A stretch of 64,000 bases of DNA, taken from positions 124,001-188,000 of the IMG/VR virus record IMGVR_UViG_3300050014_000823. One strand, 5' to 3'. Under the pieces are notes generated by a model. That model worked only from the letters and a program-made list of their open reading frames with translations. It searched no databases and was not told the origin of the DNA. Positions 19,858-48,866 of the stretch are shown one piece after another. The position numbers and the translations under genes are program-made. Each line of letters opens with the position of its first letter. Position 1 is the stretch's first letter.

Positions 19858-19947
19858 TGTTTTAATGTAAATTTTGACATTAAATACTCAATGGTATGAT
19901 TTCTGATAAGTTATGTGAAAATAACTTTATTTAAAATTTTAAAAGCT

Positions 19948-20286
19948 ATGTTAGTAAGAAGAAGCACAACACCATCCATTTTGGATTTGATATTCGATGA
20001 CGATTTATTTAATCCATTCAAAGACACATCGATTCAATGCCCGATTCACGATGTTATCGAAAACGAAAAAGAATTTGTTGTTGAAGCAATGTTAGCCGGG
20101 GTTAAAAAGGAAGATGTTCTCGTTGATATCAACGCAAGGAGATTGTCAATTGAGGCAGTACGCAAGGAAGTTAAAGACCTGAAATACAACCGTAAAGAAT
20201 CCTATACAGGCAAATATAAAAGGTCTTTCATTTTACCGGATATTGCCGATGCAGAAAACATCACAGCCAACTTGGAAGACGGGGTA
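19948..20286 (+). pseudogene. Hsp20 small heat-shock protein, 5' part (interrupted)
   Basis: Alpha-crystallin motifs DVIENEKEFVVEAMLAGVKKEDV and FxRSFILP..AD.ENITANLEDGV; the frame leaves hsp20 after GGG GTA. Confidence 0.9.
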
Positions 20287-20386
20287 CATGAACAGTTCGG
20301 TTAAATCTACAAAAAATTACAAGAACCTATGAAAATCTATGAAAAAAATAAATTTAAGAAAAACCGATATTTTTATTTAATATATA

Positions 20387-21813: not shown

Positions 21814-21851
21814 AAAACAAGATGAGGTCACAAATTGTGACCTCATTTTTT
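21814..21851. terminator. Bidirectional terminator
   Basis: Stem ATGAGGTCACAA/TTGTGACCTCAT with an A-run before and a T-run after, between convergent genes. Confidence 0.8.
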
Positions 21852-22500
21852 ATTCGAATATGTCTTCTGGCATTGACTTCTTTAACTTTGTTTTTATGTA
21901 GTTGATTTTGTTGCTCACAGTACTACTCGTAAGTTGGAATTCACTGCCAATTTCCTTATAGTCATACCCTTGAACATATTTCATATCAAGCAGGGCATAG
22001 TCATCGGGCGATATTTGTTTGGAAATATAGCTTAGTGCATTGCTATTCTCAAAGTTACATGAAGTTGAGTTTACAATTGAGCCAGTAACTGTGCCTGAGT
22101 TTGAAACTGAAACATTCCCATCACTCACAGTAAATGTATTGTTGAAATATCCACCCGAACCATAGTCACAGGAAGTCAGAGTAACATTTGTGTTTGCGGG
22201 TAATATGGTGGTACAGCAGACTGCAGTACAACGCCACTTATCTATCATGTAATTTTTACAGATTGTCAACACCCAAGATTTGAATTTAGCTTTGTGTTCG
22301 CTAAAGTCCTTGATGTTCATGAAGATTTTAATCAGCACTTCTGATACGTCATCGTCAATATCGTAATAGGTTTTGTATTTGCTTAAAATAAAATCTTTAA
22401 CAACTTTTCTATAACGTTTATACAGTATTTCTTGTGCCGTCTGATTTCCATCCAAAATATTTTGAATTAGAACTATATCGTCCTGCTCCTTGCTTATCAT
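21850..22500 (-). CDS. ECF-type sigma-70 factor with an unusual Ser/Thr/Cys-rich linker (start likely MISKE)
   Basis: Region 2 (DDDVSEVLIKIF...FKSWVLTICKNYMIDKWR) and region 4 HTH (GYDYKEIGSEFQLTSSTVSNKI). Confidence 0.8.
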   Translation of the reverse strand: MISKEQDDIVLIQNILDGNQTAQEILYKRYRKVVKDFILSKYKTYYDIDDDVSEVLIKIFMNIKDFSEHKAKFKSWVLTICKNYMIDKWRCTAVCCTTILPANTNVTLTSCDYGSGGYFNNTFTVSDGNVSVSNSGTVTGSIVNSTSCNFENSNALSYISKQISPDDYALLDMKYVQGYDYKEIGSEFQLTSSTVSNKINYIKTKLKKSMPEDIFE

Positions 22501-23497
22501 AAGGTTTTGCCAACTTATTAATAAAGTAATCATCCACAGTCAAACCCCTTGCGCTACGTAGGCTTTTCAGTACTTCGTCAATACCTCTTCTCTTACGAAG
22601 TTCATCCAAATCCTTCTCACAAGGAATTTTAACTATTTTGACCCTTTCCTCACAATCCACATAAATATTATGTAGGGTGTAATACAATTCAATAGCATTT
22701 TTATATGCGTCAGGGTCTAATAAAACCACAACATCTGGTTTTAATTCTTTCAGTTTTAAAAATAAAGTCGATGAAATTGTCTTTCCCAACATCGGTATGA
22801 TGTTAACGGGGAAACTGAACATTTCAAATGCGCCTTCAACAAGATATACAGTAGAATCCCAATTTACAAATCCCTCATTAAAGATAATCTTGTCTTTATC
22901 AGACTTTGGATTATCATAGGGTTTAATTTTCTTATTTCCAATATCATAATTTCTTGCAACGAAATAATTGACCTCACCGTTCTTATCGTATGACGGTACA
23001 ATTATTCTTTTTTCATATTTACCTGTAGTACAAAAACCAAGCCGATATTTTAAAATTATATCCCTTGATATCATTCTTTCATTAATCATGTAGTTATATG
23101 CCTCAAAATGTTCTTGATTTGTTGCATCCATTTGACTGAATAAAATCATTTCCTCTGGCAACTTTACAGCTACATATTCTTTTTCATCATCCTCATTATA
23201 TTCATAATCTGCATAAATGCTTGCATATGATTTATAAAGGTCATAATCTATCGAAGTTCCGAATGTCCGGATTAATCTGCCAAGCGAACCACTGAACTTT
23301 GGCTCATCACACTTCCAACACCTAAACATTCTCTTAGCAGTGTTGATTTCTAAGTTGAATTTTCCGTCAGGATAACTAAGACCCTCTCTTTCTTGGCAAT
23401 GCGGACAGTTAACCTGTACCTGTTCAGATACTTGCAAACCATTTACATCGCCAAAGACGTTCTGGATTATACTATGAAATTCCTGTCCCCGAATCAT
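22418..23497 (-). CDS. dnaG: DNA primase (Zn-binding domain plus TOPRIM)
   Basis: CPHC...CWKC Zn motif; RIIVPSYD..G.VNYFVAR; VYLVEG and LLDPDA TOPRIM motifs. Confidence 0.85.
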   Translation of the reverse strand: MIRGQEFHSIIQNVFGDVNGLQVSEQVQVNCPHCQEREGLSYPDGKFNLEINTAKRMFRCWKCDEPKFSGSLGRLIRTFGTSIDYDLYKSYASIYADYEYNEDDEKEYVAVKLPEEMILFSQMDATNQEHFEAYNYMINERMISRDIILKYRLGFCTTGKYEKRIIVPSYDKNGEVNYFVARNYDIGNKKIKPYDNPKSDKDKIIFNEGFVNWDSTVYLVEGAFEMFSFPVNIIPMLGKTISSTLFLKLKELKPDVVVLLDPDAYKNAIELYYTLHNIYVDCEERVKIVKIPCEKDLDELRKRRGIDEVLKSLRSARGLTVDDYFINKLAKPYDKQGAGRYSSNSKYFGWKSDGTRNTV

Positions 23498-25761: not shown

Positions 25762-26070
25762 TTATATAAATACATTGCCATTTTTTTTAAGAAAGTTCAG
25801 TGTTTCTTCTATTTTCATACATTCTTTTCGGAATGAAACCTCTTCAGTTATAGATAGTTCGAACCACTCACCTTCTTTATGAAAGTGAGAATAACGTCTT
25901 TGTAAAGCATGCTCAATTTTAATTGCATGCTCAGTTAAGTATGTGTCAATGAGTTTTAATGGAGACGAGTTTCCCGTCTGCAGTTGTTGAATTCTTTTTG
26001 TGGGGTGCTTTGAAATCCCAATCTTATAATACCCGTTTTCTAATGATTGTATTAAATAAATGTATCGCAT
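25762..26070 (-). CDS. GIY-YIG (T5orf172-like) nuclease
   Basis: YIYLIQS...YYKIGISK.P.KR..QLQTGN...EH.LQ...EGEWF. Confidence 0.85.
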   Translation of the reverse strand: MRYIYLIQSLENGYYKIGISKHPTKRIQQLQTGNSSPLKLIDTYLTEHAIKIEHALQRRYSHFHKEGEWFELSITEEVSFRKECMKIEETLNFLKKNGNVFI

Positions 26071-26964: not shown

Positions 26965-27696
26965 TTAAAAATCAATTGCGAATAAAACCGTCCTTGAAAT
27001 TTGACCATTTTTCTCAATCGGGTCGTTGAATTTACCGATAGCTACAAGGTTTCCGTTATCATCATAGATACCAATTTCAGTCATGAAAACTGACTGACCG
27101 CCCCAAGTATTATTGTTTGACGAATTAAATTCACCAAGTGGTAATAATATCGAAAGATTTGTTGTATAGACATCTGCATGTATTTCCGCACCGACATTTC
27201 CTAAGAAGAATGTTTCGTCACCAAAACACAATTCACTGTCTGCAGCTTGTAAATTTGACGGATAGTTTAATCCGTTAATGTTTGTATTCAGACTATATGT
27301 TGGTAGAACACTATAATTGTTTAATGCCACCTTAAATACCTGACCAGTTAATTGCTGTGGTGTTAATGGTGTTCCTGCAGTATGACCACTAATTTGACCA
27401 CTTACGTCAACAATTTTCCACTTAGCAGGGTCTGGTGTAAGATTTGTAGTTGTTAAACCAGTTTGAACCAATGCATAAAGATAATTGGCTGTATAGCCAG
27501 TGCCTGCACTAACACCTGTGTTTAAAAATTTAAAATCGTTTATCTCAGGAAATATTATACGAACTTCTTCAATGTCGAGTACTTCGGTACTCACTTTTAC
27601 TGGATGAATATAATTACAATGCACTGCAGGACTATAACCGCCTGCAACAACTGTTGGTTTTAAAAGATATGTGACAAAAATCGTATAATCAGTCAT
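26965..27696 (-). CDS. Tail/baseplate structural protein
   Basis: C-terminal TEIGIYDDNGNLVAIGKF..PIEK resembles tail-fibre attachment domains; late motif at 27710-27718. Confidence 0.6.
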   Translation of the reverse strand: MTDYTIFVTYLLKPTVVAGGYSPAVHCNYIHPVKVSTEVLDIEEVRIIFPEINDFKFLNTGVSAGTGYTANYLYALVQTGLTTTNLTPDPAKWKIVDVSGQISGHTAGTPLTPQQLTGQVFKVALNNYSVLPTYSLNTNINGLNYPSNLQAADSELCFGDETFFLGNVGAEIHADVYTTNLSILLPLGEFNSSNNNTWGGQSVFMTEIGIYDDNGNLVAIGKFNDPIEKNGQISRTVLFAIDF

Positions 27697-27721: not shown

Positions 27722-29701
27722 TTATTCGAAAATTGCAGAGGCACAATTCTTACATATTGTCTGATATGCTAATTCAATTTTATTCTGATGTTCTTCACTT
27801 CCCCAAAAATCCCGTAATTCCTGTGTCTTAAAACTACCAAACTTAAATTCGAACTTATAATCGTTACAACAAAGAAATGCATCGCCTGCAGCATTAATAT
27901 GTATCCAGCCAATTGGTCTTCCACCAACTTCCCGACCATTACCACAACCAATTACCTTTCTGTTTAAATCGCCCTTCATCATGTATGCCTCAATTGCCCA
28001 TTTATTTGACATGACATTATCCAATAGACCTGCTCTGTCAATTAATGAAGGTACACTGAAAATCTGTAAGCCAGGAAATAGTTGCCTTGCAAGTCTTTCT
28101 TGTGTTGCTAATTCTCCGTTTATTAGGTCTAAGTCAATATCTTGAGGAAAATCCGGACCTTTAGTTAGCCAACCACCGTCTGCAACAAACGATTGTTTAT
28201 TAACACCATTTACTTGTATTGAGAATGATTTATCCTGTACTTTTTCTGGCAACATTTCCATTGCATGCCTGATATTTGCAATAAGTTTATCGAATAATTC
28301 TATGTCGAAACCTGTTCTTTTATTCCATGTCACTGCATCGAATGCGGGAATGTTAAGACAGATACCATTTACTACATGTTTATATTTTCTTATCAAATCA
28401 ATCTTCTCAGGCGTTAATGCTACTCCATTTGACAATATCATTGAGCACATGCCATATTTATCACAGATTTCCAAGAATTCTTTATAGTGAGGATAAAGCA
28501 GAATTTCGTTATAGTGAGCACTATAAAACCCGCCAAAGTTCTTAGCTACAAGTCCATCTGGTTTATTTCTTTCGTCAACCATATTCTTAATAATCTTCTC
28601 AAGCAATTCTGGACTCATTATTTCACGTCCTTCCAAAGGATTTCCAATATATTTCACCGGACAATACCAGCACTTTGAATTACAGAAACCAAAGGGGTCT
28701 AACTGCATTTGGGTTATTTTGAATTTATCAAGTATTGTATTTTTCTTCATGGTAAAAGTATTCCCAGAAATCAGACAAGATTTTTTTGCTGTTTTACAAA
28801 CTTCTTGCCAGTAAAAATATGATGCATATTTTGGAGATACTGAAAGGTCTTTTCCATATGGATATTCGTTCATGAAATTTGACTTGAAAAACTTATCGCT
28901 TTTAGTATCATCGGTTACGCCTGCATTATGAAGTATCGTATACTTTTCAACGTCATCATAGCCGTTTGTTACCCAACCAAAGTCCATTCTCTTATCAACA
29001 AGAGTTTCATGACCAAAATACCAGCCATTCCATAAAAAACTCCACATACCTGCGGTCCATTTCTGTATGGCATAGTCATATTCGTTCTTTTTAATGTGCA
29101 GATGTTCTATACTACAAAAATATTCATATAGTTTTGCACTGTCCTTTTCAACCTTATCCCAGAACTCAAAATTTGTGCCTTTCACAATATATTGAGCACC
29201 ACCCGAATTACTGTTCATGAGTTTAGGAATCAACTTGTCGATACCAACAATTTCACACATTTTTTCATATATGTGATTTCCTTTACATTGAATATAGTCG
29301 TAGTTTATGTAGAATCTCGTATCACTAATATACCAAGTGTCATTGTTCATCATTTCTTCGAAGTTCGGCTTTTTAGTAAACACAATATCAGCATCATGCA
29401 AGAATAGTACATCACCATGAATTTCAGGATGTGCCTGCATATGTTGCTTCATCATGTTAAAATAAATTGAGGGAATATAGACTTTATTCTCTCTTGTATC
29501 GTTGTAAAAGAAAAACCTCACAGGATACGTATTGACGAGTTTTTTAAATTCTTCAGGGATTACGTCATTCTCAATTGCACAGAGAATGTCCATTTGATTA
29601 GGGTCAACGCCTTTCTCTATAAAATTGTTAATTAGTACTTCGATTTGCCAAGCATAATATTTAATGGCTGGCTGTGCACAAATATATCTTAGTTGTTTCA
29701 T
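27722..29701 (-). CDS. Fusion of a GT-A glycosyltransferase (HPAT/SERGT-like) and a radical SAM/SPASM domain (start likely MKQLR)
   Basis: N-terminal YYAWQ, HDADIVF (DxD) and LHNAG; C-terminal CNSKCWYC (CxxxCxxC) and a SPASM-like C...CCNDY...CKNC; TATCTTTG element at 29706-29713. Confidence 0.75.
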   Translation of the reverse strand: MKQLRYICAQPAIKYYAWQIEVLINNFIEKGVDPNQMDILCAIENDVIPEEFKKLVNTYPVRFFFYNDTRENKVYIPSIYFNMMKQHMQAHPEIHGDVLFLHDADIVFTKKPNFEEMMNNDTWYISDTRFYINYDYIQCKGNHIYEKMCEIVGIDKLIPKLMNSNSGGAQYIVKGTNFEFWDKVEKDSAKLYEYFCSIEHLHIKKNEYDYAIQKWTAGMWSFLWNGWYFGHETLVDKRMDFGWVTNGYDDVEKYTILHNAGVTDDTKSDKFFKSNFMNEYPYGKDLSVSPKYASYFYWQEVCKTAKKSCLISGNTFTMKKNTILDKFKITQMQLDPFGFCNSKCWYCPVKYIGNPLEGREIMSPELLEKIIKNMVDERNKPDGLVAKNFGGFYSAHYNEILLYPHYKEFLEICDKYGMCSMILSNGVALTPEKIDLIRKYKHVVNGICLNIPAFDAVTWNKRTGFDIELFDKLIANIRHAMEMLPEKVQDKSFSIQVNGVNKQSFVADGGWLTKGPDFPQDIDLDLINGELATQERLARQLFPGLQIFSVPSLIDRAGLLDNVMSNKWAIEAYMMKGDLNRKVIGCGNGREVGGRPIGWIHINAAGDAFLCCNDYKFEFKFGSFKTQELRDFWGSEEHQNKIELAYQTICKNCASAIFE

Positions 29702-29722
29702 ATTACAAAGATACAATTATTT

Positions 29723-32263
29723 TTAATATACGCAACCACATACAACAACATACGAAGAACTGCTATCATATGAAAAACATTGTGTACACCAACTGGTTCC
29801 AGTTCCACCTATATTAATATATGTATTAATACCTGTATGTCCTTGAGGACCACTTTGATACAAAAGAATGTTATCGTACTTCACATAATAACAACCTGTT
29901 GCAGGATTTACTGTGCAAGATTTTGAACTTGCAATTGGTGGAACACCTAATGTATAAACAACACTATCGTTAGAACACATTAAGCACATTGCACCACCAA
30001 CACAATAACCTAAAACATCTGTACACGTATTAATGGTCAAGGATGGTGGTAGTGTTGTAGTGGTTGTTGTCGTAGTTGTGGTAGTAGGTGGTGTTTCTGG
30101 AACACAATTAGTAACACAATCACCATAGCACTCAGTTACACCAACACTCCAACCGTCATTGGTATGTAATACGAATTCACTATATGAACCCGCATCACCA
30201 CCGACCCAGTTTGTCCAACCAATTACATCACCATGATTAACAGGCTGTAATAATCCACCCGTATGACATGTAAATTGGTCTGAACATATTGTACATATTA
30301 TGTTTGTATTACAAGTAAATTGGATACAAGAATATGCAAGTCCCGGATTTGTTGTTGATAGGTTTGCGGTGAACTGTAAGCCAAGTGAATTTCCCGGTGC
30401 TAATACTGGTGACAAGTTAATATATCCAAATTGATTGTTTGCACTACCGCCTTGACATTGAACACATAAATATGTTGGTGTTAATGGTGGTGCAGTAGTT
30501 GTACTTGTAGTTGTTGTCGTAGTAGTTGTACTTGTTGTTGTACTCGTTGTTGTACTTGTAGTGGTCGGCAACGTAGTTGTACTTGTCGTAGTTGTACTTG
30601 TCGTAGTCGGCAACGTAGTTGTACTTGTCGTAGTTGTACTTGTCGTAGTCGGTGCAGCCGGTGTAGTAATTGAGAATCTATTACTTGATGAAACAGTATC
30701 AGTACCATTCCAAGTAGCATATGCCATGTAATTATACAAAGTACTTGGGGCTAATCCATTAATTGCCGTACTGAAATGATTAACACCTGCAGGAAGTGTA
30801 GTTCCCACAACCAATTTACTCCAAACACTATCTACGGCTTTCTTATAGTACATACCGTGTTCAGTAACAAGTTCTGGTGAGGTTATTTGAGCACCACCTG
30901 TACCTGCAATACTACCTGGAAATCCTTCGATTGTCAACAATGAAAATCCTGCTTCTCCAACATAACCACCACCACCTAAAGTTGCGATGTAGTCTGGATA
31001 AGTCCAACTTCTGTTTGATTTGTATGACAAAGCAAAAAGTAATTCTTGGTCTTCGATAACAAATATTTTTAAATCGGTGAAACACTTACCAACAGGATTG
31101 CCATATGGGTCGGCTAAGACATAATATTCTAAGTTTAGAGATTTTGTCAAACCTGTTAAAAGTAATGGTGCACCAGTTGCTTTTAATTTCAATCCAAGCG
31201 TTTTTCCTGATGACTTATGCCACATAATTGTTGGAATATTCAACTCAGGAGTCTTTAAATAAAATCCTTCTCCATATACATTAGCGGGTGAAGGGTTGGT
31301 ATAGTGAATTATACCTAATTTCTTATAAAGTGGTGCTTGATTTTGTATATACGAAACAAATCCACCAAATATTTTACTGTTGTATTTTGTGAAAGTTCTA
31401 TTATTACCTGTGAGTCCTGCAATATTATCGGTAAAAACAATTGACATGTTCCAAAATGGAAAAGCTGCAGTATCACACTGACTATTTGTTAAAAATGACA
31501 ATACACTTTCCTCAACATATTGAGTAGAATATTGATTTAAGATTGTGTCTCCGGTTAAATTCAATACGTTTGCATAAATCATTGCACCTGCTAAACCAGT
31601 TGGAGTATAACCACTGAAGTTCGGTAATTCTCTGTCAACAACAACAGTTAAATTGTTATTTGCTAATGTACCTGTCTTACTTACAACTTGATACATCAAA
31701 TACGGTGTAGGTCTTGCTATATTTATTAAGTACGGTGTTGTGTCGCCATTTAAGGTCCACTTAACCAATACAAAGTCACCAATTGCTGGTTCTTGACCAC
31801 TTGCACCATAAGTCGGAGATTTGCGTAACTGCAAACTGTTTCCACCTGTAACGGTGTTCATATAAACCATTGCATCGGGTTGTTTACAGTGATTGCTGTC
31901 ATTTAAAAATGTTGTAGCACCACTATTAAAAAATCCTACGGGTTCTATTGGGTTTGTTACCAAATATGCAGAAGTTGGTACGCTTGGAATCACATTGTAC
32001 GGATTTCCACTAATATTTCTTGGAATAAATGACAATAAACTTGGGTTAGCATCTGCAGCTCTTAATATTCTGGCATAGTATGGACTTGCTGTTGGGTCAC
32101 TTGGATTATCAAGTAATACTTGACTGTTGAAAACATAATCCATTTCGCTGTCACCGATAGCAAAAGATTTAAAATTCAAATTACCCGTAGATAGTAATTC
32201 TCTACCACATGAAGTCAATTTAATGTTCAATACCACAGGGTCTTTTTTCTCAATGAATGCCAT
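29723..32263 (-). CDS. Tail/baseplate structural protein with FN3-like domain, Thr stalks and Cys-rich modules
   Basis: N-terminal FAIGDSEMDY; GLAPSTLYNYMAYA FN3-like segment; long Thr tract; late motif at 32280-32288. Confidence 0.65.
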   Translation of the reverse strand: MAFIEKKDPVVLNIKLTSCGRELLSTGNLNFKSFAIGDSEMDYVFNSQVLLDNPSDPTASPYYARILRAADANPSLLSFIPRNISGNPYNVIPSVPTSAYLVTNPIEPVGFFNSGATTFLNDSNHCKQPDAMVYMNTVTGGNSLQLRKSPTYGASGQEPAIGDFVLVKWTLNGDTTPYLINIARPTPYLMYQVVSKTGTLANNNLTVVVDRELPNFSGYTPTGLAGAMIYANVLNLTGDTILNQYSTQYVEESVLSFLTNSQCDTAAFPFWNMSIVFTDNIAGLTGNNRTFTKYNSKIFGGFVSYIQNQAPLYKKLGIIHYTNPSPANVYGEGFYLKTPELNIPTIMWHKSSGKTLGLKLKATGAPLLLTGLTKSLNLEYYVLADPYGNPVGKCFTDLKIFVIEDQELLFALSYKSNRSWTYPDYIATLGGGGYVGEAGFSLLTIEGFPGSIAGTGGAQITSPELVTEHGMYYKKAVDSVWSKLVVGTTLPAGVNHFSTAINGLAPSTLYNYMAYATWNGTDTVSSSNRFSITTPAAPTTTSTTTTSTTTLPTTTSTTTTSTTTLPTTTSTTTSTTTSTTTTTTTTSTTTAPPLTPTYLCVQCQGGSANNQFGYINLSPVLAPGNSLGLQFTANLSTTNPGLAYSCIQFTCNTNIICTICSDQFTCHTGGLLQPVNHGDVIGWTNWVGGDAGSYSEFVLHTNDGWSVGVTECYGDCVTNCVPETPPTTTTTTTTTTTLPPSLTINTCTDVLGYCVGGAMCLMCSNDSVVYTLGVPPIASSKSCTVNPATGCYYVKYDNILLYQSGPQGHTGINTYINIGGTGTSWCTQCFSYDSSSSYVVVCGCVY
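30564..30652 (-). repeat. Perfect 42-bp tandem duplication inside the Thr stalk
   Basis: gtcggcaacgtagttgtacttgtcgtagttgtacttgtcgta at 30564-30605 and 30606-30647. Confidence 0.9.
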
Positions 32264-37898: not shown

Positions 37899-38555
37899 TT
37901 AAACTTTTATTAATTCTTCTTTACTTATCGAACATTTTGTTCTCTTAACAACATTATCTCTCCAAGGTATAAATACAAGATTATTTAAACTTGCAATTAT
38001 TTCTGGTTTAATGTCATTTTTAAATCCCTCAAAAATTGAATATTTATGGTCCAAACAATATGCACCGTCAATTCCAGAAACACCCCTTTTCTCATAATTT
38101 TCCAATAAACTAATTGGTTGTTTATTGGTTAATTTAACAACCAATAATCTATATTTTTTATATTCGGGTAAGTTTTTTAAATATGTGTTATATTCAATAC
38201 CTGTGCGTTTAACTAAACCTACAGAAACTCCTTCACTAACAGTTCTCCTATAATTAACGGTAGTTAAATATTTATCTAAATATGAAGCATTTATATTCAA
38301 CACTTTACTGATTTCCTTAGCACTTTTATATTCAAACAAATATAATTTACGTATTTCATCCCTTTGTTTTTCGCTTAATATAATTTTAATACCATTACTT
38401 TTCCCTTTTCTTAATACATGTTCTCTTTTTAAAATCCTGTTTATCGGAGTGAGACTTGTGTTAAGTAGTTCTCCAATTTTTTTCGTACTTAATCCATCAA
38501 TCAAATAATAATTTTTGATTTTATTAACTTCAATATCAGAAAATTCTATCCTCAT
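37899..38555 (-). CDS. HNH-like free-standing endonuclease with N-terminal HTH repeats
   Basis: LDHKYSI...NNL.FIPW.DN..K (HNH-like); two HTH-like segments; inserted between tail genes. Confidence 0.65.
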   Translation of the reverse strand: MRIEFSDIEVNKIKNYYLIDGLSTKKIGELLNTSLTPINRILKREHVLRKGKSNGIKIILSEKQRDEIRKLYLFEYKSAKEISKVLNINASYLDKYLTTVNYRRTVSEGVSVGLVKRTGIEYNTYLKNLPEYKKYRLLVVKLTNKQPISLLENYEKRGVSGIDGAYCLDHKYSIFEGFKNDIKPEIIASLNNLVFIPWRDNVVKRTKCSISKEELIKV

Positions 38556-39014: not shown

Positions 39015-41867
39015 CTATACTGGTGCTATATCACCTGCATATACATCATTAGGACTACCTATGACATAATTACCAACAATATTTGACACACCCACCAAGT
39101 ATGCATCGGCAGATGCTGCAGACTCTGGACAAATACTTGCAGCTCGTGTTGTAAGATATAAATTATCTCCTGCATTAACTATAAACGGACCCCAAATTCC
39201 ACCAATATATCCACTGAAACTACTTGCAATACTACAGCTACATTTGGTTACACCATTACATACGATACAAACACCTGCAGTGCCTTTAAACGCATTTTTA
39301 CCAAGACTATATGCAACACATAAATTAAATGAATCTCCTGCACACATAGATGGACACAATTGACCCTCACACGTAGAATTAAATATATCCAAATATATCT
39401 GACAAACATATGATGCAGTGGTTGTGGTTGTTGTAGTAGTTGGCAACGTAGTTGTCGTTGTAGTTGTTGTCGTAGGTGGAGGACCGCCTGCATAGCTACA
39501 GCAACAATATGGATTACATCTTGCAAAATTGCCAGAAATTGGTGTAACACCAATACATACTGCTGACATACTACCACCATGACAAGAAATATTTCCCACT
39601 TCAGTATAATTAAACATACGAACATCGTCACCAGGAAGAACTTGGAATGAAATTGAAGGCATTAAACAAACCTGTGCTTCGGTTATGCAACAACATAGCA
39701 TTGGATTACCATTACACATTACACAGAAACGTGAGAACGAACCCGGTGCTTGGTCATAATTAACACATAAATCACCAGTTATGCATGCACAATAACATTC
39801 ACCTGCGCTCATTGGATATGATGAAGCCAAGCAAAAATCTCTTGCACTATAAATACCACCATCATTGCCTGGAGCAACATATGTCATACATAAATCAATA
39901 TATTTTACCGCAGGTGGTGGAAGTGTTGTGGTAGTCGTGGTAGTTGTTGTTGTTGTGGTTGTCGTAGGTGGAGTTCCCCCTGCATAACTACAGCAACAAT
40001 AAGGCGTTCCTAATTGATAATTGCCAACAATCGGAGCAACTGAACGAATACATATGCCTGACATTGTACCACCCGGACATGTAATGTTTGCTACTTCCGT
40101 ATAATTACACATGTACACCGTATCACCTTGATGAACAATAATTGTGGTACTTGGTATAGCACAAACTTCTGTTTGGTCTATGCAACAAGTTAAACAACAT
40201 GACCCATTATGACCTATACCCGCACGTGAGTATGAACCCGGTGCTTGGTTATAATTAACACATAAATCAGCCATTAAACAAACAGAATAACTATCGCCCG
40301 GAGCCATTGGACTCGATGTTGCTAAACAAAATTCTCTTGTACTATAAACACTACCGTCATTACCGGGAGCAGCATATGTTTGAAATAAAGTAACATAATT
40401 CGGTGGTGGTGCAGTAGTCGTTGTGGTAGTTGTTGTCGTTGTAGTAGTCGTTGTAGTACTTGTTGTGGTTGTCGCCTCTGTTGTAAACACCGATTGACCA
40501 TCATATGCAGTTCCTGCATTATTGGTTGCATATACACCTACATAATAGGTTGTAGCTGGAATTAAACCAGTCATTAAACTTGCAAAGCCGACACCAACAG
40601 TATTATTGCCATCAGTTGTTTTAAAATTCGCAGTTGTTGGGTTTGGACTTGTACTCCAAACAATACCACTTACAGTTATTGGTGCGCCACCGTCACTAAG
40701 TATGACTCCACCGCCTTGTGCTGTTGTTTGAGTTACACTACCTGCGCCACCAGTTGCTACTGTTGGTAAATCTGCTGCTGTTTTGAACAATACTTCATTA
40801 CCATAAGCGATACCCACAGCATTAATTGCATATGCTCGTACATAATATGAAGTAATCTTAGTCAATCCTGTGATTGAAGACGTAAATGTTCCAATACCTG
40901 TTCCATCGACAACAACATTGTCCAGAATTGTCGGAGTACTACTTGTGCTCCAAACTATTCCTTTCTCAGTTACAGGATTACCACCTTCTGAAGTCACATT
41001 ACCACCACCTGTTGCAGTTGTTTGTGCAATTGCAGTAATACTGCTTGTGGTTACAGTTGCAAGTCCCCAAGTACTGAATGACAATTCACTACCGTACATA
41101 ATATCTGTATTATTAACTGCATATGCTCGAACAAAATATGTTGTTGATGTAGTTAAACCCGTCAAATAACTATTAAAATTACCAATTCCAAACCCATTCG
41201 TTGTTGTATTGCCTGCAATGGTAGGTCCAGAGAATAATCCCCAAGCAACACCACGTCTGATTATCGGACTACCGCCATCAGCAGTTATTTCACCACCAGT
41301 GGTTGCACCACTTGACGTAATATTTGTTATTGGTTTTGTAGAAATTGTAGAAATTGCTAATGTCGTGAAATTTACTTCCTCACCATAAACAAGTCCAGCA
41401 CTATTAATAGCATATGCACGTGCATAATATGTAGTAAGATTTGTTAAACCGCTTATTGGCACTGTAAAAGTACCTAATCCACCTGCAACAATTATTTTTG
41501 TACTTGCTGTTGTCGGATTTGGACTTGTACTATATACAAGACCTCTTTGTGTAACAGCATGTCCACCGTCTGCAAGAACCGCACCACCGCCAATTGCAGA
41601 GTTTTTAGTAATTGTTGAAAATGTGTTTGTTGATACTGTTAAAGTAGTTAAAGGCGGTGCTATATAAGCACTAAAGAAACCAATATCTTCGGCATCCTGT
41701 GTCAAACTAAATTTGACATAGTATGTTTTGCTCAAATCGGGAACAAGCGTCATTGTGGTTGCCGTACAGCCAGTAATGAGAATACCCGTTTCCGGGTCTC
41801 TGTACGAACACGGAGCAGTTGTTCCGGTTGTCATTATCCGATATATTGTTTTCTTTATGAGTTCCAT
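39015..41867 (-). CDS. Tail-associated adhesin-like protein: four FN3-like repeats, then three Thr-stalk plus Cys-rich modules
   Basis: Repeats of TxYYxRAYA.N..G..YG.E..F.T; TTTT tracts; duplicated APGNDG...NYTEV...PYCCCSYAGG modules. Confidence 0.7.
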   Translation of the reverse strand: MELIKKTIYRIMTTGTTAPCSYRDPETGILITGCTATTMTLVPDLSKTYYVKFSLTQDAEDIGFFSAYIAPPLTTLTVSTNTFSTITKNSAIGGGAVLADGGHAVTQRGLVYSTSPNPTTASTKIIVAGGLGTFTVPISGLTNLTTYYARAYAINSAGLVYGEEVNFTTLAISTISTKPITNITSSGATTGGEITADGGSPIIRRGVAWGLFSGPTIAGNTTTNGFGIGNFNSYLTGLTTSTTYFVRAYAVNNTDIMYGSELSFSTWGLATVTTSSITAIAQTTATGGGNVTSEGGNPVTEKGIVWSTSSTPTILDNVVVDGTGIGTFTSSITGLTKITSYYVRAYAINAVGIAYGNEVLFKTAADLPTVATGGAGSVTQTTAQGGGVILSDGGAPITVSGIVWSTSPNPTTANFKTTDGNNTVGVGFASLMTGLIPATTYYVGVYATNNAGTAYDGQSVFTTEATTTTSTTTTTTTTTTTTTTTAPPPNYVTLFQTYAAPGNDGSVYSTREFCLATSSPMAPGDSYSVCLMADLCVNYNQAPGSYSRAGIGHNGSCCLTCCIDQTEVCAIPSTTIIVHQGDTVYMCNYTEVANITCPGGTMSGICIRSVAPIVGNYQLGTPYCCCSYAGGTPPTTTTTTTTTTTTTTLPPPAVKYIDLCMTYVAPGNDGGIYSARDFCLASSYPMSAGECYCACITGDLCVNYDQAPGSFSRFCVMCNGNPMLCCCITEAQVCLMPSISFQVLPGDDVRMFNYTEVGNISCHGGSMSAVCIGVTPISGNFARCNPYCCCSYAGGPPPTTTTTTTTTLPTTTTTTTTASYVCQIYLDIFNSTCEGQLCPSMCAGDSFNLCVAYSLGKNAFKGTAGVCIVCNGVTKCSCSIASSFSGYIGGIWGPFIVNAGDNLYLTTRAASICPESAASADAYLVGVSNIVGNYVIGSPNDVYAGDIAPV

Positions 41868-43714
41868 TATACAACAGACTTTCTCAGATATACTTTAATG
41901 TCCTTTTCGGGATATTTTATTTCAAACATACCGTCTTCGGTAGAATAAATAGTGTTGTTGATTATTTTAATCTCACCAGTTGTGGTATTCAAGATTTCCT
42001 GAGAAACAACGTTGTTCGAATACTGACCACCAACTCTATTATAAACCTTAATACTGATGACGTTTATAACACCATTTGCAGAGAGTATTTGTTTCTGAAG
42101 TCTACCAAGGAAAATATTTTCGTCCATTTCGTAGTTGTTCACATCAAAATAATCTCTGACAATTGTAATAATGCTATTGGCTATCTGATTATCTGCAATG
42201 TTTTCCACATATACGTCAATATCGAATGCCAAGTTGTAAATTTTACCGTCTTTAATCTCCACATAGTCATTTACCATGCGGAATTCGGTTAGGTATTCCG
42301 CAATATTATCTTTTAACAGAGTATTGCTTGTATTTGACAACTTACCGTCCACACCAATGCCGAGCATCGAAATAACTACCTTATTATTGTATTTAAAAGC
42401 ATTTGCCCTAAAAGGTGAACCAAACTTACCTGGCATTTTATAGAGTTGTAATAAATAATCTGTAAGCGTGACATCCCTTGTTTGACTTGCAAAATTAAAC
42501 TTGATTAACTGTCTTATTTGCTCAATGCTCAAACCATCATTACCGCCAATGGCAGGTATTGGATTATTAGTTTTTAAACTTCTCTGTACACTCTGATTAA
42601 AGTCAGAACGTGAACCTGCAACTCTCAGAGAATATCCACCGAGTTGTGTAAGGGTTGCTGCACCGAGATTTGAATTAATACCGCCACCAACTCTATATCT
42701 CACAAATAATGTATAGTTTGGTTTAAGTTTTTCACCCAAAGCGGTGTTATTTAAGAAGTTATCGAGAAAATACTTATTACTTACACCAACTTTAATAAAG
42801 CCGTTTTTAAATGCGTCAGCATCTGCATCGCCACTACCGAAGGTCAGTTTACAATAACCGTTTGGGGTATATTCTTTAATGAATTTCTTCGTTATGTCAA
42901 TCCAACGAGCAGCTTTAATACCCGTATTCTGTGTGTTAACCGAACTGCTGAAGTTCTCAACAAAAACTCTTTGCTGTGCAAGCCACTCCACTTCATAAAA
43001 TCTATTTTCACTTGTATATAAATCTGAAAGCGGTGGATTGTTAGTATAATTTGTACCTTCGAGCAAAATAACGTTTTCTATTTCAATTACATCTGGGTCT
43101 GGAAGTGTTATACTAAAAAATGATGTAACGTCTTGTGGATTAATTATTCTTTTATATATGCTTGTTGAACCATTGATAACTACTTCTCTTTTGGTAACAT
43201 TATAGCTTACGATAATACCATTTGAGTTTAAGTTTGGTATAATTGAACGATTAGGGTCACCAAGATTGCTCATAGGTGAATTCCAGTCAATTGTGTCTTG
43301 TGTTTCAAATATTTTACCACCACCAAGTACCTGTGCGCCAGGAGCAAGCGTAGGATAATAACTGGCATCGGGTCTATCACCAAGTACAGGAACAGTTACA
43401 GAAAAGTCTACTACTGTTACAGAAGGTCGTCTGCCGGGAATATTAAATCCCATATTTTTTGCAATATTTAATATTGATGACCTCAATTGTGCATACTCCA
43501 ATTGTGTTTCTTGAAATGCTCTGTCAGTATTAACGCTCAAGTTATTACCAACACCCGCATTTAAGTCGATTAACATAGCACCAACGGAACTATCGGTAAA
43601 ATCAGATAAAACTTCTGGATATGCTTGACGAATAAACGAAATCAAATCTGTTTTGATTTCCCCAAATGTTCGTGAGCCATATTGAATTATGTTTGTTGAA
43701 TTGTCAGTAGCCAT
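41867..43714 (-). CDS. Baseplate wedge subunit (T4 gp6/P2 gpJ-like)
   Basis: RTFGEIK.DL..FI...YP....DF.DSS.G.MLIDL.A; AQLRSSILNIAK.MG; AIGGNDG.SIEQIR...RDVT..DY. Confidence 0.85.
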   Translation of the reverse strand: MATDNSTNIIQYGSRTFGEIKTDLISFIRQAYPEVLSDFTDSSVGAMLIDLNAGVGNNLSVNTDRAFQETQLEYAQLRSSILNIAKNMGFNIPGRRPSVTVVDFSVTVPVLGDRPDASYYPTLAPGAQVLGGGKIFETQDTIDWNSPMSNLGDPNRSIIPNLNSNGIIVSYNVTKREVVINGSTSIYKRIINPQDVTSFFSITLPDPDVIEIENVILLEGTNYTNNPPLSDLYTSENRFYEVEWLAQQRVFVENFSSSVNTQNTGIKAARWIDITKKFIKEYTPNGYCKLTFGSGDADADAFKNGFIKVGVSNKYFLDNFLNNTALGEKLKPNYTLFVRYRVGGGINSNLGAATLTQLGGYSLRVAGSRSDFNQSVQRSLKTNNPIPAIGGNDGLSIEQIRQLIKFNFASQTRDVTLTDYLLQLYKMPGKFGSPFRANAFKYNNKVVISMLGIGVDGKLSNTSNTLLKDNIAEYLTEFRMVNDYVEIKDGKIYNLAFDIDVYVENIADNQIANSIITIVRDYFDVNNYEMDENIFLGRLQKQILSANGVINVISIKVYNRVGGQYSNNVVSQEILNTTTGEIKIINNTIYSTEDGMFEIKYPEKDIKVYLRKSVV

Positions 43715-44406
43715 TATATTATGTTTTTTAAAATTCGATTAATATTATTTATTTCGCTGTATTTTATTCTCAACAATAAGATATTTTTACTGTTGGCATA
43801 TAAATTTTTTGCTTCGTCATTACTTTGTCTTATGTTAAGTTTAGCACTACCGCCCCAATATTCGATTGGTTTAAAGTGTTGTTCTCCGTCATACTCAATA
43901 AGTATGTTTACCGTTGGTAAATAGAAATCGAATGATAGTTTATTTTTACCACAATCAGCAAATCTTTTTTCTTTAACATATTCAATCATATGCATATCCA
44001 AATATTTTTTTATTAATAATTCGCCTTTAGATAATTTACATATTGAGCAACCTTTACCGTTTAAATGACCGTTTGGTGTCTGATTGAATATGCCGTGTTC
44101 TGGACAAATTATATTAATTTTATTATGTGCATTAACGTATTCAACTAAAGAATACCCATATCTATTGTTGTGTATTAAGTTTGCTTTATCAATAAATTCA
44201 TTTAATGTTATATAATTACCAGCACATTTGGGACATCCATGATTACGTAAATGATGTTTTGGTATTTGTTCGAAAACTCCATGTTCTGCACACACTATTT
44301 TAATTCTCGAAACATTATTAACATAGTCCACTAACGAATAATCGTATTTCTCGTCATGAATTTTCTTAGCCTTTTCAATAAATTCTTCAGTGGTATATTT
44401 TTTCAT
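43714..44406 (-). CDS. Free-standing endonuclease (DUF723-like Zn repeats plus Vsr/DUF559-like nuclease), copy 1
   Basis: Two FI.KA..IH..YDYS.V.Y...I.C..HG.F.Q.P..HL..GC..C repeats; FDFYLP..N.LIEYDG.QH. Confidence 0.75.
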   Translation of the reverse strand: MKKYTTEEFIEKAKKIHDEKYDYSLVDYVNNVSRIKIVCAEHGVFEQIPKHHLRNHGCPKCAGNYITLNEFIDKANLIHNNRYGYSLVEYVNAHNKINIICPEHGIFNQTPNGHLNGKGCSICKLSKGELLIKKYLDMHMIEYVKEKRFADCGKNKLSFDFYLPTVNILIEYDGEQHFKPIEYWGGSAKLNIRQSNDEAKNLYANSKNILLLRIKYSEINNINRILKNII

Positions 44407-44409
44407 ATT

Positions 44410-44808
44410 TTAAAAGTTTAAATCTAATTGACCTGATTCGCTGAAGCTATCTTCGGTATAAGTGAATAATATTGTTACGTTAAGTTGATTTTCAGATATT
44501 GGTTGACCATTATCATCGAGATTCCAATTAAAATTTATTTTATTGATTTTTAAGTTTGGAATGTACTTCGACACAGTAGTTTTGATTTCTTGCTCAACAT
44601 CTGTAGCGTTTAAAGTATCGTTAGGTTCGAAAATGTATTTCAGTAAGTTTGTACCGTATTCCGGCTCATAATACCTTTCTCCTTTCTGAGTGAGCAACAG
44701 CAAAAGCAAGTCAGAACTAAACGCTTCCTTAGTTACTTGTGTCAGTAAGAAATACGTGTTTTTACTTAAATCGTCATTCAAAGGAAATTTGATATTGTAC
44801 GTAATCAT
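44410..44808 (-). CDS. Baseplate gp25-like protein
   Basis: LLLLLTQKGER...PEYGTNL..YIFEP...EIK..V.KYIP; upstream of the wedge gene; late motifs at 44822-44840. Confidence 0.85.
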   Translation of the reverse strand: MITYNIKFPLNDDLSKNTYFLLTQVTKEAFSSDLLLLLLTQKGERYYEPEYGTNLLKYIFEPNDTLNATDVEQEIKTTVSKYIPNLKINKINFNWNLDDNGQPISENQLNVTILFTYTEDSFSESGQLDLNF

Positions 44809-47396: not shown

Positions 47397-48779
47397 TTAA
47401 ACTACTGCCAAAGATTTCATAACTGCAGCTTTGTAAAATTCCGCACGTTTTTTAGTAACTTCGGCAAGATTATATTCTTCTTTAAAGTCCTCATATAGCT
47501 GTTCCCCAAGTTGTTTACGAAGGTCTGCATCTAATATCAGTCTCTTTAAATACTTCTGCCAATACTTTCTGGCATTTTTTTCTGCAGGAATCAACACACA
47601 ATTTTCCATGTGTCTACCATCCACATCGTATGGTGGAATATCTGAACAGACAATTGGAAGTTTCCTTGTCCAACATTCAACCTGTTTCAAATTTGACTTC
47701 ATCCTGTTAAATGGATTGTCGGCAAGTGGTGCGATTACTATATCGGTTTCATCCAATACCTGTGCGTATGTATTGGCTTTCTGTGTCCATCTACGAGCAA
47801 AGTTACCTTCATTATCATACTTCACATTTCTTTCGAAGTTGCCGAGCCATTCGAGATAATCTTTGTCTTGAATATTTCTGTGATTATCGGTCAAAATCTT
47901 TTCGTAAACAAGATATACGCTTTCTTCTGACTTAATATCACGTTGTTCCTGATTGAAAACTTTACCCCTGTACTTTTCTTTTAATGCTTCAGGTAAACCA
48001 GGAATTAAATCAACATTACCACGACTTTTGTTAATTATTTTAACATTACCAATGGTCCAAAGTCCTAATTTCTGCAATTCAGTACCAAATTCCTGGTTGA
48101 ATGTAATATCAGTTGTATTACCTTCTGTGTCCCAACCTGCAATAATGACTTTGAATTTATCATGGAGCATTGGGTCACCATTAAGTACATTGAATACTCC
48201 ATCGAGTTGTTCAACGTCACCCATGTGAGAAGAACCTGCCATGTAAGTAATTCTTACACGACCATCTGGGTCGGGTTTCCAGTTGTTCTGAAACTGCTTC
48301 ATCCAAGTAGGGTCAATACTGTTATAGAACACCATGACATTATCCTTACCTGTCACTTTACGAATTTCGTCCGCAAATATGTCCGTAGTTGTAGTAACAT
48401 AGTCAGCAATCTTTAAGTTTTCCAGAATTGGAATATGCATTTTCTTTTCCTGTGCAAGACCATAGAACGGGTGATTCTTATGTAGTTGCCAGTAGTCGTC
48501 AATGTCCACAATCAATATTACACCTGACTTACGCAATTCAGTTGCAAGTAACTGCATCTGTTTTGGGTCGGGAAGAAATTGACGGTGATAATGTATAATG
48601 TGAAATGTTTTGAGATAATCAATTGTCTTAGGGTCATTAAAGTCTAATTCGGGGTTGATTTCAACATAAAAATCTTCTGAATGATTCCTATCGAGTTCCG
48701 TTGCCGGGGTTAATGTTCTGAAGTAGTTTACACCTGCTCCATCTAAGTTGTAGAATAAAATTCTAATTTTTCCGTCCAT
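47397..48779 (-). CDS. GT-B (GT4-like) glycosyltransferase (start reassigned to MDGKI)
   Basis: DGAGVNYFR, DIDDYW, ADYVTTTT..FADE, DIVIAPL..N.FN..KSNLK..E, IVCSDIPPY. Confidence 0.8.
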   Translation of the reverse strand: MDGKIRILFYNLDGAGVNYFRTLTPATELDRNHSEDFYVEINPELDFNDPKTIDYLKTFHIIHYHRQFLPDPKQMQLLATELRKSGVILIVDIDDYWQLHKNHPFYGLAQEKKMHIPILENLKIADYVTTTTDIFADEIRKVTGKDNVMVFYNSIDPTWMKQFQNNWKPDPDGRVRITYMAGSSHMGDVEQLDGVFNVLNGDPMLHDKFKVIIAGWDTEGNTTDITFNQEFGTELQKLGLWTIGNVKIINKSRGNVDLIPGLPEALKEKYRGKVFNQEQRDIKSEESVYLVYEKILTDNHRNIQDKDYLEWLGNFERNVKYDNEGNFARRWTQKANTYAQVLDETDIVIAPLADNPFNRMKSNLKQVECWTRKLPIVCSDIPPYDVDGRHMENCVLIPAEKNARKYWQKYLKRLILDADLRKQLGEQLYEDFKEEYNLAEVTKKRAEFYKAAVMKSLAVV

Positions 48780-48866
48780 CTTGTGTTTATAAAATATTAT
48801 AAAATTATGCAATTAATTATAAATACGTAAAAATAGCGGAAAATCTGCCAAGTGGCAAGACATTTT

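Follow-up and report, generated by a model that had tools for sequence, protein, structure and literature searches.

A glycosyltransferase–radical SAM fusion encoded beside a threonine-stalk protein of a jumbo phage and its possible part in virion glycosylation

Why would a phage encode a glycosyltransferase joined to a radical S-adenosylmethionine (SAM) enzyme next to the genes of its baseplate and fibres? The question is raised by a gene in bases 124001–188000 of the 299,144-bp IMG/VR virus record IMGVR_UViG_3300050014_000823, which is an estimated 91% complete and whose size points to a jumbo phage. This stretch of 64,000 nucleotides, the whole of the DNA analyzed here, is referred to as the window. 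We propose, with a probability of about 0.6, that the glycosyltransferase (GT) half of the encoded protein O-glycosylates threonine (Thr) stalks of virion proteins and that the radical SAM half tailors the attached sugar.

The gene corresponds to a minus-strand open reading frame (ORF), 27722–29716, that encodes 664 residues if read from the TTG at 29716. The ATG at 29701 is almost certainly the true start, because the database copy of the protein (P0001) has 659 residues and its homologues start with MKQLR. An assembly artefact can be excluded as the origin of the fusion, since the same GT–radical SAM architecture is found in 52 of the 384 cluster-representative proteins retrieved (51, plus one with an extra C-terminal extension); full-length fusions are 53–81% identical to the window protein. 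The gene and its parts are:

27722–29701, minus strand: GT-A/radical SAM fusion gene, 659 residues, ATG at 29701, stop codon at 27722–27724
28787–29701, minus strand: GT-A glycosyltransferase domain, approximately residues 1–305; PHROG 4417, HPAT/SGT1-like fold
29387–29398, minus strand: H-D-A-D, residues 102–105, DxD metal/nucleotide-sugar motif
28217–28720, minus strand: radical SAM core, approximately residues 328–495, with CNSKCWYC at 28661–28684 and HYNEILLY at 28493–28516
27725–28216, minus strand: bridging region and Twitch-like auxiliary-cluster domain with five conserved cysteines

The N-terminal domain had to be identified through structure prediction, because Pfam and NCBIfam gave no GT family. 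Residues 10–308 fall in phrog_4417, annotated as 'unknown function' (PHROGs, E = 6e-66), and an exhaustive search for GTs of this type returned 825 clusters at 50% identity. The AlphaFold2 model of the domain has a pLDDT of 96.9 and a pTM of 0.93. When it was compared with Swiss-Prot models using Foldseek, the top eight matches were the Arabidopsis peptidyl-serine alpha-galactosyltransferase SGT1 and seven HPAT/RDN/PLENTY enzymes (TM-score 0.63–0.67, E = 1.6e-11 to 2e-8, identity 11–13%). GT8 and GT24 enzymes came next (TM-score 0.41–0.50 for GT8), and many of these use protein or protein-linked acceptors (glycogenin, UGGT, XXYLT1). Against the PDB, at least 340 matches were obtained at E ≤ 1e-3, the best 50 of which were all GT-A enzymes, with UGGT, glycogenin, WbbM, XXYLT1 and LARGE1 leading. 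The domain combines a Rossmann-like α/β/α nucleotide-binding fold with a DxD motif, as expected of a GT-A enzyme. Its fold starts at residue 4, and no N-terminal hydrophobic segment or membrane anchor was found.

An earlier, sequence-only reading of this locus had likened the N-terminal pattern, with its AWQ and HDAD motifs, to plant HPAT/SERGT enzymes. The resemblance is borne out as a structural likeness and not as sequence membership: the window protein has no match to Pfam HPAT (PF23452) at E ≤ 1, and 2 of 51 relatives match that family weakly (best E = 1.3e-4). Both motifs are real and conserved. AWQ occupies residues 17–19 (ATG numbering), and in the alignment of 51 stand-alone homologues W18, D105, H258 and K273 are invariant while D103 and Q19 are conserved in at least 90%; H102, D103 and D105 are invariant among 26 fusion proteins. 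A PDB profile search with the N-domain alignment also produced spurious repeat matches to the TALE protein Hax3 over 31 residues and a weak match to GNPTAB, and both were discarded.

What would such an enzyme glycosylate? Two proteins encoded in the same module of the window are the candidates:

29723–32263, minus strand: 846-residue putative fibre protein with 24 cysteines, directly upstream of the fusion gene, the proposed substrate; Thr stalks at residues 530–598 (30470–30676) and 724–746 (30026–30094)
39015–41867, minus strand: 950-residue protein with 44 cysteines and weak fibronectin-type-III (fn3) matches, just downstream of a gp6-like gene, the second candidate substrate; poly-Thr stalks at residues 457–491, 627–654 and 795–822

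The entire 299-kb genome holds only three substantial poly-Thr ORFs; one of them is adjacent to the fusion gene and another lies 9 kb away in the same module. The third, outside the window (G000:C1 203002–203733, minus strand), encodes 243 residues with 16 cysteines, a T17 run and mixed S/T runs. The N-terminal 535 residues of the 846-residue protein are 70% identical to an orthologue on a syntenic 372-kb contig, L005, where the stalk precedes a separate GT gene.

The association between this GT and poly-Thr tracts extends far beyond the window. Gene order was assessed at 80 IMG/VR loci found with the GT profile (160 IMG/VR loci overall with the set found through a radical SAM profile). A poly-Thr tract is encoded by the gene immediately upstream of the GT (rank −1) in 54 of 79 cases (68%); the share is 22% at rank −2, 4–12% further upstream and 0–2% downstream. 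The rank −1 pattern recurs in 25 of 34 GT clusters defined at 70% identity, and the upstream poly-Thr proteins belong to at least 11 unrelated families. Co-occurrence with Thr-stalk genes, by which the sequence-only reading could be checked, is strong and polarized to the gene directly upstream.

Co-variation was then examined within protein families. Relatives of two major tail proteins, phiFL1A gp50 and Lactococcus phage 1706 orf13, were collected using queries devoid of the poly-Thr tail. Across the 37 loci of the two families, 14 combine the tail with a GT gene immediately downstream and 23 lack both, with no discordant locus (Fisher's exact test, 1.6e-10, uncorrected for phylogeny). Within the phiFL1A family, the groups of sequences that combine tail and GT number at least three and are interspersed among relatives lacking both. 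In the window's own fibre family, enough flanking sequence was available for 60 loci; after three apparent exceptions were resolved, five combined stalk and GT, none had the stalk only, one had the GT only and 54 had neither (1.1e-6 by the same test, likewise uncorrected).

Cultured Firmicutes siphophages carry the GT as a stand-alone gene, located directly after the major tail protein gene in phiFL1A, SA2 and 1706 and after the capsid gene region in iLp84 and VPE25. The capsid and major tail proteins of phiFL1A, iLp84 and 1706 all end in poly-Thr (the capsid proteins are annotated as such, except phiFL1A gp45, which was assigned by position). The major tail proteins of SA2 and VPE25 also have poly-Thr C-termini, and VPE25 has more tracts in unannotated proteins near the GT. 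The GT is gp51 in Enterococcus phage phiFL1A, next to the poly-Thr proteins gp45 and gp50, and orf14 in Lactococcus phage 1706, next to orf10 and orf13; Lacticaseibacillus phage iLp84, PLE3 and Chryseobacterium phage MA9V-3 are also among the cultured carriers.

Two further features of these loci were observed. In Staphylococcus phage SA2, near-pure poly-Thr short ORFs in another frame overlap the 3′ end of the major tail gene (L177 3093–3710 and 3649–3927), and in Enterococcus phage VPE25 a similar ORF overlaps the end (3′) of the gene that precedes the GT (L178 3728–3883); programmed frameshifting may generate long-stalk isoforms of these virion proteins. In the jumbo-phage contigs L273 (6089–7958) and L274 (5391–6374 and 8853–9842), two paralogous HPAT-like GT genes precede or flank a stalk-bearing fibre gene, a hint that priming has more than one specificity.

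By sequence and by fold, the C-terminal half is a radical SAM enzyme. Pfam Radical_SAM (PF04055) reaches 43.7 bits, above its cut-off of 29.5, and a partial TIM barrel is modeled with a pLDDT of 88.6; together with the confident model of the N-domain, these results corroborate the GT-A–radical SAM fusion recognized by the sequence-only reading. Its CxxxCxxC motif is CNSKCWYC, with C340, C344 and C347 invariant, as is the HYNE(I/V)LLY segment. The full SPASM domain proposed in the same reading did not hold up. Pfam SPASM passes its cut-off (31.6 against 21.5 bits), NCBIfam SPASM (TIGR04085) fails it (12.8 against 27 bits), and the seven-cysteine SPASM motif CX9-15GX4C ... CX2CX5CX3C ... C is absent, the conserved C-terminal cysteines being five only: C586 (within 27938–27952), C611 and C612 (within 27860–27877) and C650-x2-C653 (within 27725–27760). 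The protein terminates six residues past this C-terminal CxxC. As only five such cysteines are conserved, there are enough for one auxiliary cluster. Their pattern is compatible with the C...C...CxxC arrangement of Twitch domains. Among solved structures the Twitch enzyme BtrN comes closest; it is the only PDB sequence match of the radical SAM half and ranks top by phmmer, profile HMM and VIA-align; the family profile lifts the match, which falls in the auxiliary-cluster region, to E = 1e-6. Judged by its sequence, the radical SAM half looks Twitch-like and not fully SPASM. Viperin-like (NCBIfam viperin_w_prok) and spiro-SPASM membership were rejected, both scoring far below the cut-offs.

 Foldseek against the PDB ranked the sugar radical SAM enzymes DesII (E = 1e-9) and BlsE (E = 8e-9) at the top, with the peptide maturases anSME, SuiB, SkfB, CteB and EpeE nearly as close; with scores for DesII, BlsE and BtrN similar to those for anSME, CteB and SuiB, the fold alone cannot distinguish a sugar from a peptide substrate. 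About 25 residues link the GT domain to the radical SAM core, stand-alone radical SAM homologues begin about 15 residues ahead of CX3CX2C, and Pfam and NCBIfam searches found no RRE or other domain for leader-peptide recognition on the N-terminal side of the core. Members of the family are overwhelmingly viral, and its nearest bacterial structural neighbours include radical SAM proteins fused to GT2 or GT1.

Domain partners and gene neighbours were also compared. Among the 384 retrieved proteins, 117 consist of the GT module alone, 87 of the GT with another C-terminal module, 52 of the GT with the radical SAM module and 119 of the radical SAM module alone, which is also found once each with a sulfotransferase, GT1 and GT2. 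The other C-terminal partners of the GT module are GT2, GT6, GT7C, GT11, GT25, GT29 and several SAM methyltransferase families, so that in other phages a methyltransferase or a second (elongating) glycosyltransferase holds the same fused position. The 80 viral loci found through the radical SAM profile include 12 fusions and 19 with a separate GT gene, nearly always abutting the radical SAM gene. On L005 the order is stalk fibre, GT, 456-residue putative GT, radical SAM and a conserved 249-residue gene, and the two products are 44% (GT) and about 70% (radical SAM) identical to the corresponding halves of the window protein. At loci that lack the HPAT-like GT, the radical SAM gene is most often accompanied by a PF11397 GlcNAc-transferase (24 of 49 loci), which we take to be CAZy family GT60, the polypeptide/Skp1-hydroxyproline GlcNAc-transferases; hhalign detected no relationship between the HPAT-like GT family and this PF11397-type neighbour. 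Also near stand-alone radical SAM genes are nucleoside diphosphate (NDP)-sugar epimerase/dehydratases, GDP-mannose dehydratase, GT2 and a prolyl 4-hydroxylase (P4H)-like oxygenase. In other lineages, the fusion gene is followed by genes for a GT1-methyltransferase, a CTP-transferase, a PfkB kinase, a GT7-LamG protein, a second radical SAM enzyme and a weakly GT9/TibC-like protein (E ~7e-4). Because its partners and neighbours are sugar enzymes, the radical SAM enzyme behaves as a component of a glycan pathway beside a priming transferase.

Stand-alone radical SAM loci such as L152, L145 and L167 combine a PF11397 gene with an NDP-sugar epimerase/dehydratase and, in seven loci, with the P4H-like oxygenase, which is of the 2-oxoglutarate-Fe(II) type; this gene set is reminiscent of the Skp1 hydroxyproline-GlcNAc pathway. 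The stalks often contain proline (TTTAAP, TTTLPP), so phages with this set might conceivably glycosylate hydroxyproline. A search of the window's genome for PF13640 (P4H-like) gave no match; a search for PF11397 gave none either, and as control genomes also gave none, absence of this family is not implied.

The window's genome encodes other enzymes that might act on the same glycan. A large glycan-biosynthesis cluster at 238.8–250 kb (G000:C1, locus L181, outside the window) comprises an NDP-sugar epimerase/dehydratase, a PfkB sugar kinase, UDP-GlcNAc 2-epimerase, Methyltransf_24, two GT2 enzymes and a GT2_5–GT4 protein; donors or elongating enzymes for virion glycans could come from it, or its products could serve another target. 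An HNH gene interrupts this cluster. Within the same structural region as the fusion gene, the ORF at 47397–48812 (minus strand) encodes a second putative GT of 471 residues, whose match to phrog_7162 'glycosyltransferase' (E = 2.9e-33) covers only the C-terminal 130 residues.

Taken together, these observations suggest a cytoplasmic, phage-encoded enzyme that modifies virion proteins. The GT-A domain, of the Mn2+/DxD type, would take a nucleotide sugar, probably a uridine diphosphate (UDP)-sugar, and place the first sugar on Thr, possibly also serine (Ser), of the stalks in the fibre-like protein encoded upstream; it probably also acts on the stalk protein encoded at 39015–41867. The radical SAM half, presumably with one SAM cluster and one auxiliary Twitch-type [4Fe-4S] cluster, might then abstract hydrogen from the attached sugar in the manner of BtrN, yielding a keto-sugar or an epimer. 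The glycan may be elaborated further by GTs and methyltransferases encoded elsewhere, such as the putative GT at 47397–48812 and the cluster at 238.8–250 kb, and the outcome would be a mucin-like, glycan-coated stalk. Glycosylation of poly-Thr tracts by the GT is, in our judgment, quite probable, and the odds that the radical SAM half acts on the sugar after its transfer are about even. Across phages, the poly-Thr tract would be a portable tag marking the acceptor, borne by proteins of the capsid, the tail tube and the fibres and gained and lost together with its transferase by a rule that spans phages of Firmicutes and Bacteroidota. A tentative view, held at slightly under even odds, takes in all of this: tag and PHROG 4417 GT travel as a two-part cassette, repeatedly gained and lost, and the jumbo-phage GT has become fused to a mostly viral Twitch-type radical SAM enzyme.

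The sequence-only reading is thereby confirmed in what it had observed, and the core of its interpretation, an enzyme modifying virion proteins, is strongly supported by comparative genomics. Glycosylation itself, the acceptor residue, the donor sugar, the order of steps and the radical SAM chemistry are what we infer from the observations, namely which domains are present, how they fold, which motifs are conserved, and their fusion partners, gene order and co-variation. Several points weigh against our proposal. It rests on sequence, predicted structure and comparative genomics; the N-domain of the window protein matches no GT family in Pfam or NCBIfam; and the co-variation statistics take no account of phylogeny, with some loci being near-duplicates. 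The stalk/GT rule also has one clear exception, L226/L015 (IMGVR_UViG_3300038461_000191), where a GT–radical SAM fusion with an N-domain 82% identical to that of the window lies beside a truncated, stalk-less fibre of 457 residues and no poly-Thr ORF was found within 17–21 kb. Prediction of an enzyme–stalk complex gave a score of 0.01, which counts neither for nor against the proposal.

Two alternatives retain glycosylation of the stalks and differ in the role of the radical SAM half. It could act on the polypeptide, by EpeE/YydG-like L-to-D epimerization, by anSME-like oxidation of Ser, Thr or cysteine (Cys), or by thioether or C–C crosslinking in the Cys-rich modules. We consider this unlikely. 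The core starts right after a short linker with no RRE or leader-recognition domain, and the cysteines suffice for one auxiliary cluster only. A link to Cys residues or crosslinks, suggested by the sequence-only reading, is contradicted by the Cys content of the upstream stalk proteins, which is the same with or without the radical SAM enzyme (p = 0.86). Moreover, the partners and neighbours of the radical SAM family are GT1, GT2, a sulfotransferase, a GT60-like GT and NDP-sugar epimerases, and methyltransferases and elongating GTs hold the same fused position in other phages. The other possibility is that the radical SAM half works before transfer, on the nucleotide sugar, by deamination, dehydration, decarboxylation or oxidation as in DesII or BlsE, so that the GT places an unusual donor. 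DesII, which acts on a TDP-sugar, and BlsE are indeed the top PDB matches by fold, NDP-sugar epimerase/dehydratase genes adjoin stand-alone radical SAM homologues, and enzymes that make a donor are commonly fused to the transferase that uses it. We still regard remodeling of the donor as rather improbable.

A more radical alternative dispenses with virion-protein modification altogether: the GT would glycosylate phage DNA or glycans and lipids of the host envelope, and adjacency to poly-Thr would be a by-product of variable tail-fibre regions. The best-known roles of phage GTs are DNA glucosylation and serotype conversion, as summarized in PMC12619734; another large glycan cluster is present elsewhere in the genome, and the one relative with a fusion and no nearby stalk, L226/L015, would fit. 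This explanation appears very improbable given the perfect co-variation of tail and GT in the two tail-tube families (14/23/0/0), the strict polarization of poly-Thr enrichment to rank −1, and the presence of poly-Thr tails on capsid as well as tail-tube proteins of cultured carriers. The best structural matches, furthermore, are peptide O-glycosyltransferases, and neither a membrane anchor nor a flippase context was found.

Stalk glycosylation followed by sugar tailoring, the reading that we prefer, has partial parallels in known systems. By overall fold, the closest relatives of the N-domain are SGT1 (CAZy GT96) and the HPAT/RDN/PLENTY enzymes (GT95). From general background and PMC4908140, both plant families prime O-glycosylation of repetitive, extended, Ser/hydroxyproline-rich structural proteins, the extensins; modification of poly-Thr stalks would be analogous. 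Unlike these type II-anchored Golgi enzymes, the window protein has no anchor, is phage-encoded and presumably cytoplasmic, and is fused to a radical SAM enzyme; its likely acceptor is Thr and not Ser or hydroxyproline. BtrN (2-deoxy-scyllo-inosamine dehydrogenase, PDB 4m7t) oxidizes a sugar-like alcohol and carries a Twitch domain. It is a distant relative: the window domain exceeds it in length by about 100 residues, has a conserved insert that separates the core from the Cys region, and is fused or linked to a polypeptide GT. Compared with the SPASM peptide maturases anSME, CteB, SuiB, SkfB and PqqE, the window protein lacks both the seven-Cys, two-cluster motif and an RRE, and its radical SAM family has sugar enzymes as partners and neighbours.

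Mucin-type O-glycosylation is primed by polypeptide GTs, such as the GT27 ppGalNAc-transferases and the GT60 polypeptide/Skp1 alpha-GlcNAc-transferases; dense glycans on Thr/Pro-rich unstructured tracts create stiff, protease-resistant stalks. The proposed priming of Thr-rich tracts by a polypeptide GT would be similar in kind and differs in that the GT family is another one and the enzyme is viral and cytoplasmic, with no secretory pathway involved.

The phage systems closest in kind are those of mycobacteriophages. Glycans have been found on the capsid and tail-tube C-termini of Che8, Corndog and Myrna (Freeman et al. 2023, as cited in PMC12619734), and the GT genes lie within the structural operon, Corndog also carrying an O-methyltransferase (PMC4351075). 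The window, the cultured phages and the 160 IMG/VR loci likewise have a phage GT in a structural module beside surface-exposed virion proteins, and the poly-Thr capsid and tail-tube C-termini of GT-carrying Firmicutes phages parallel the positions of the mycobacteriophage glycans. What sets the window-type system apart is the poly-Thr tag, the strict order of tag and enzyme, the occurrence on fibre stalks as well as tails, the radical SAM partner and the range across Firmicutes and Bacteroidota. A tblastn search of 50,697 phage records with the whole protein gave 77 matches, and no Mycobacterium phage was present in their organism and host tallies or among the 40 matches listed; the transferases therefore appear unrelated to the mycobacteriophage GTs.

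Phage virion glycosylation is a known kind of system. To our knowledge, mycobacteriophages are the only phages for which experiments have shown that their own enzymes carry it out; there it shields the particles from antibodies. Literature searches turned up nothing on the PHROG 4417-type GT family, on glycosylation of phage poly-Thr tails or on phage GT–radical SAM fusions. What appears to be new is the enzyme family, the cassette of poly-Thr tag and enzyme, how widely it is spread over phage groups, and the radical SAM partner. If our proposal is correct, a poly-Thr tail or stalk next to a PHROG 4417 gene would predict glycosylated virion proteins from sequence alone, in phage lineages that number in the hundreds. 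Among them are cultured phages of Enterococcus, Staphylococcus, Lactococcus and lactobacilli, which are of importance in phage therapy and dairy fermentation. The proposal would also assign a function to PHROG 4417 and to a large radical SAM family that is mostly viral, establish a structural connection between a phage enzyme family and the plant enzymes that glycosylate extensins, and extend radical SAM chemistry to protein-linked glycans; we know of no other radical SAM enzyme dedicated to tailoring a protein-linked O-glycan, so that the fused one would be the first.

The fusion gene lies at the distal end of a tightly packed, co-directional minus-strand module in which a gp25-like gene, an inserted HNH gene and a gp6-like wedge gene are followed by large proteins with weak fn3 matches; the firm baseplate genes lie 12–15 kb upstream of the fusion gene on the same strand. 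The features concerned are:

44410–44808, minus strand: gp25-like baseplate gene (PHROG 261, E = 1.5e-16)
43714–44406, minus strand: HNH endonuclease gene, inserted exactly between the gp25-like and gp6-like genes (PHROG 559, E = 5.5e-66)
41867–43714, minus strand: gp6-like baseplate wedge gene (PHROG 219, E = 1.5e-21; weak Gp6-like_1st match)
29706–29713, minus strand: TATCTTTG, match to the Bacteroidota −7 consensus TAnnTTTG, putative promoter; ends 4 nucleotides before the ATG, in the 21-nucleotide gap
26965–27696, minus strand: 243-residue downstream neighbour, probably tail-associated (weak Phage_tail_fib match, E = 0.098)

The sequence-only reading had placed the enzyme between two structural genes. 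This fits the upstream side, with its Thr-stalk, Cys-rich putative fibre protein, and is less certain downstream, where the 243-residue protein offers only weak structural hints. Its counterparts, syntenic genes of 242–249 residues, are found directly downstream of GT/radical SAM genes in L005, L006 and L009, and the L009 orthologue has a crAss_MUZ_C match. The same reading took the TAnnTTTG motif as a sign that the enzyme is made before its substrates. That claim finds no support, because TATCTTTG sits in the 21-nucleotide gap downstream of the gene for the putative substrate, on the same strand of a tight co-directional module. Genome-wide there are 458 copies of the motif, which is approximately threefold enriched 0–39 nucleotides upstream of gene starts.

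Some other genes of the window deserve mention. A second HNH/homing-endonuclease gene of the baseplate/fibre module lies at 37899–38555 (minus strand), and upstream of the baseplate region there is a 2688-residue ORF at 51962–60028 (minus strand). The 102-residue ORF at 25762–26070 (minus strand), which comes just after the structural module on its downstream side, occupies the slot held by a T5orf172/MUG113 (GIY-YIG-like) gene in the syntenic contigs L005 and L006. It opens a replication-type block with a 203-residue gene, weak matches to a metallophosphatase and a primase, and a sigma-like gene.

Twenty kilobases of the window gave no megablast match to cultured phages. An HSP20 gene (19915–20304, plus strand; PF00011, E = 2.7e-16) lies near a sigma-factor-like gene (21850–22533, minus strand), an arrangement also present in the related contigs L005 and L006. 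This pair recalls the 'moraphages', aquatic phages of Bacteroidota that are large and carry heat-shock genes along with several core GTs (PMC12619734), and the likeness makes the window's phage a candidate member of that group.

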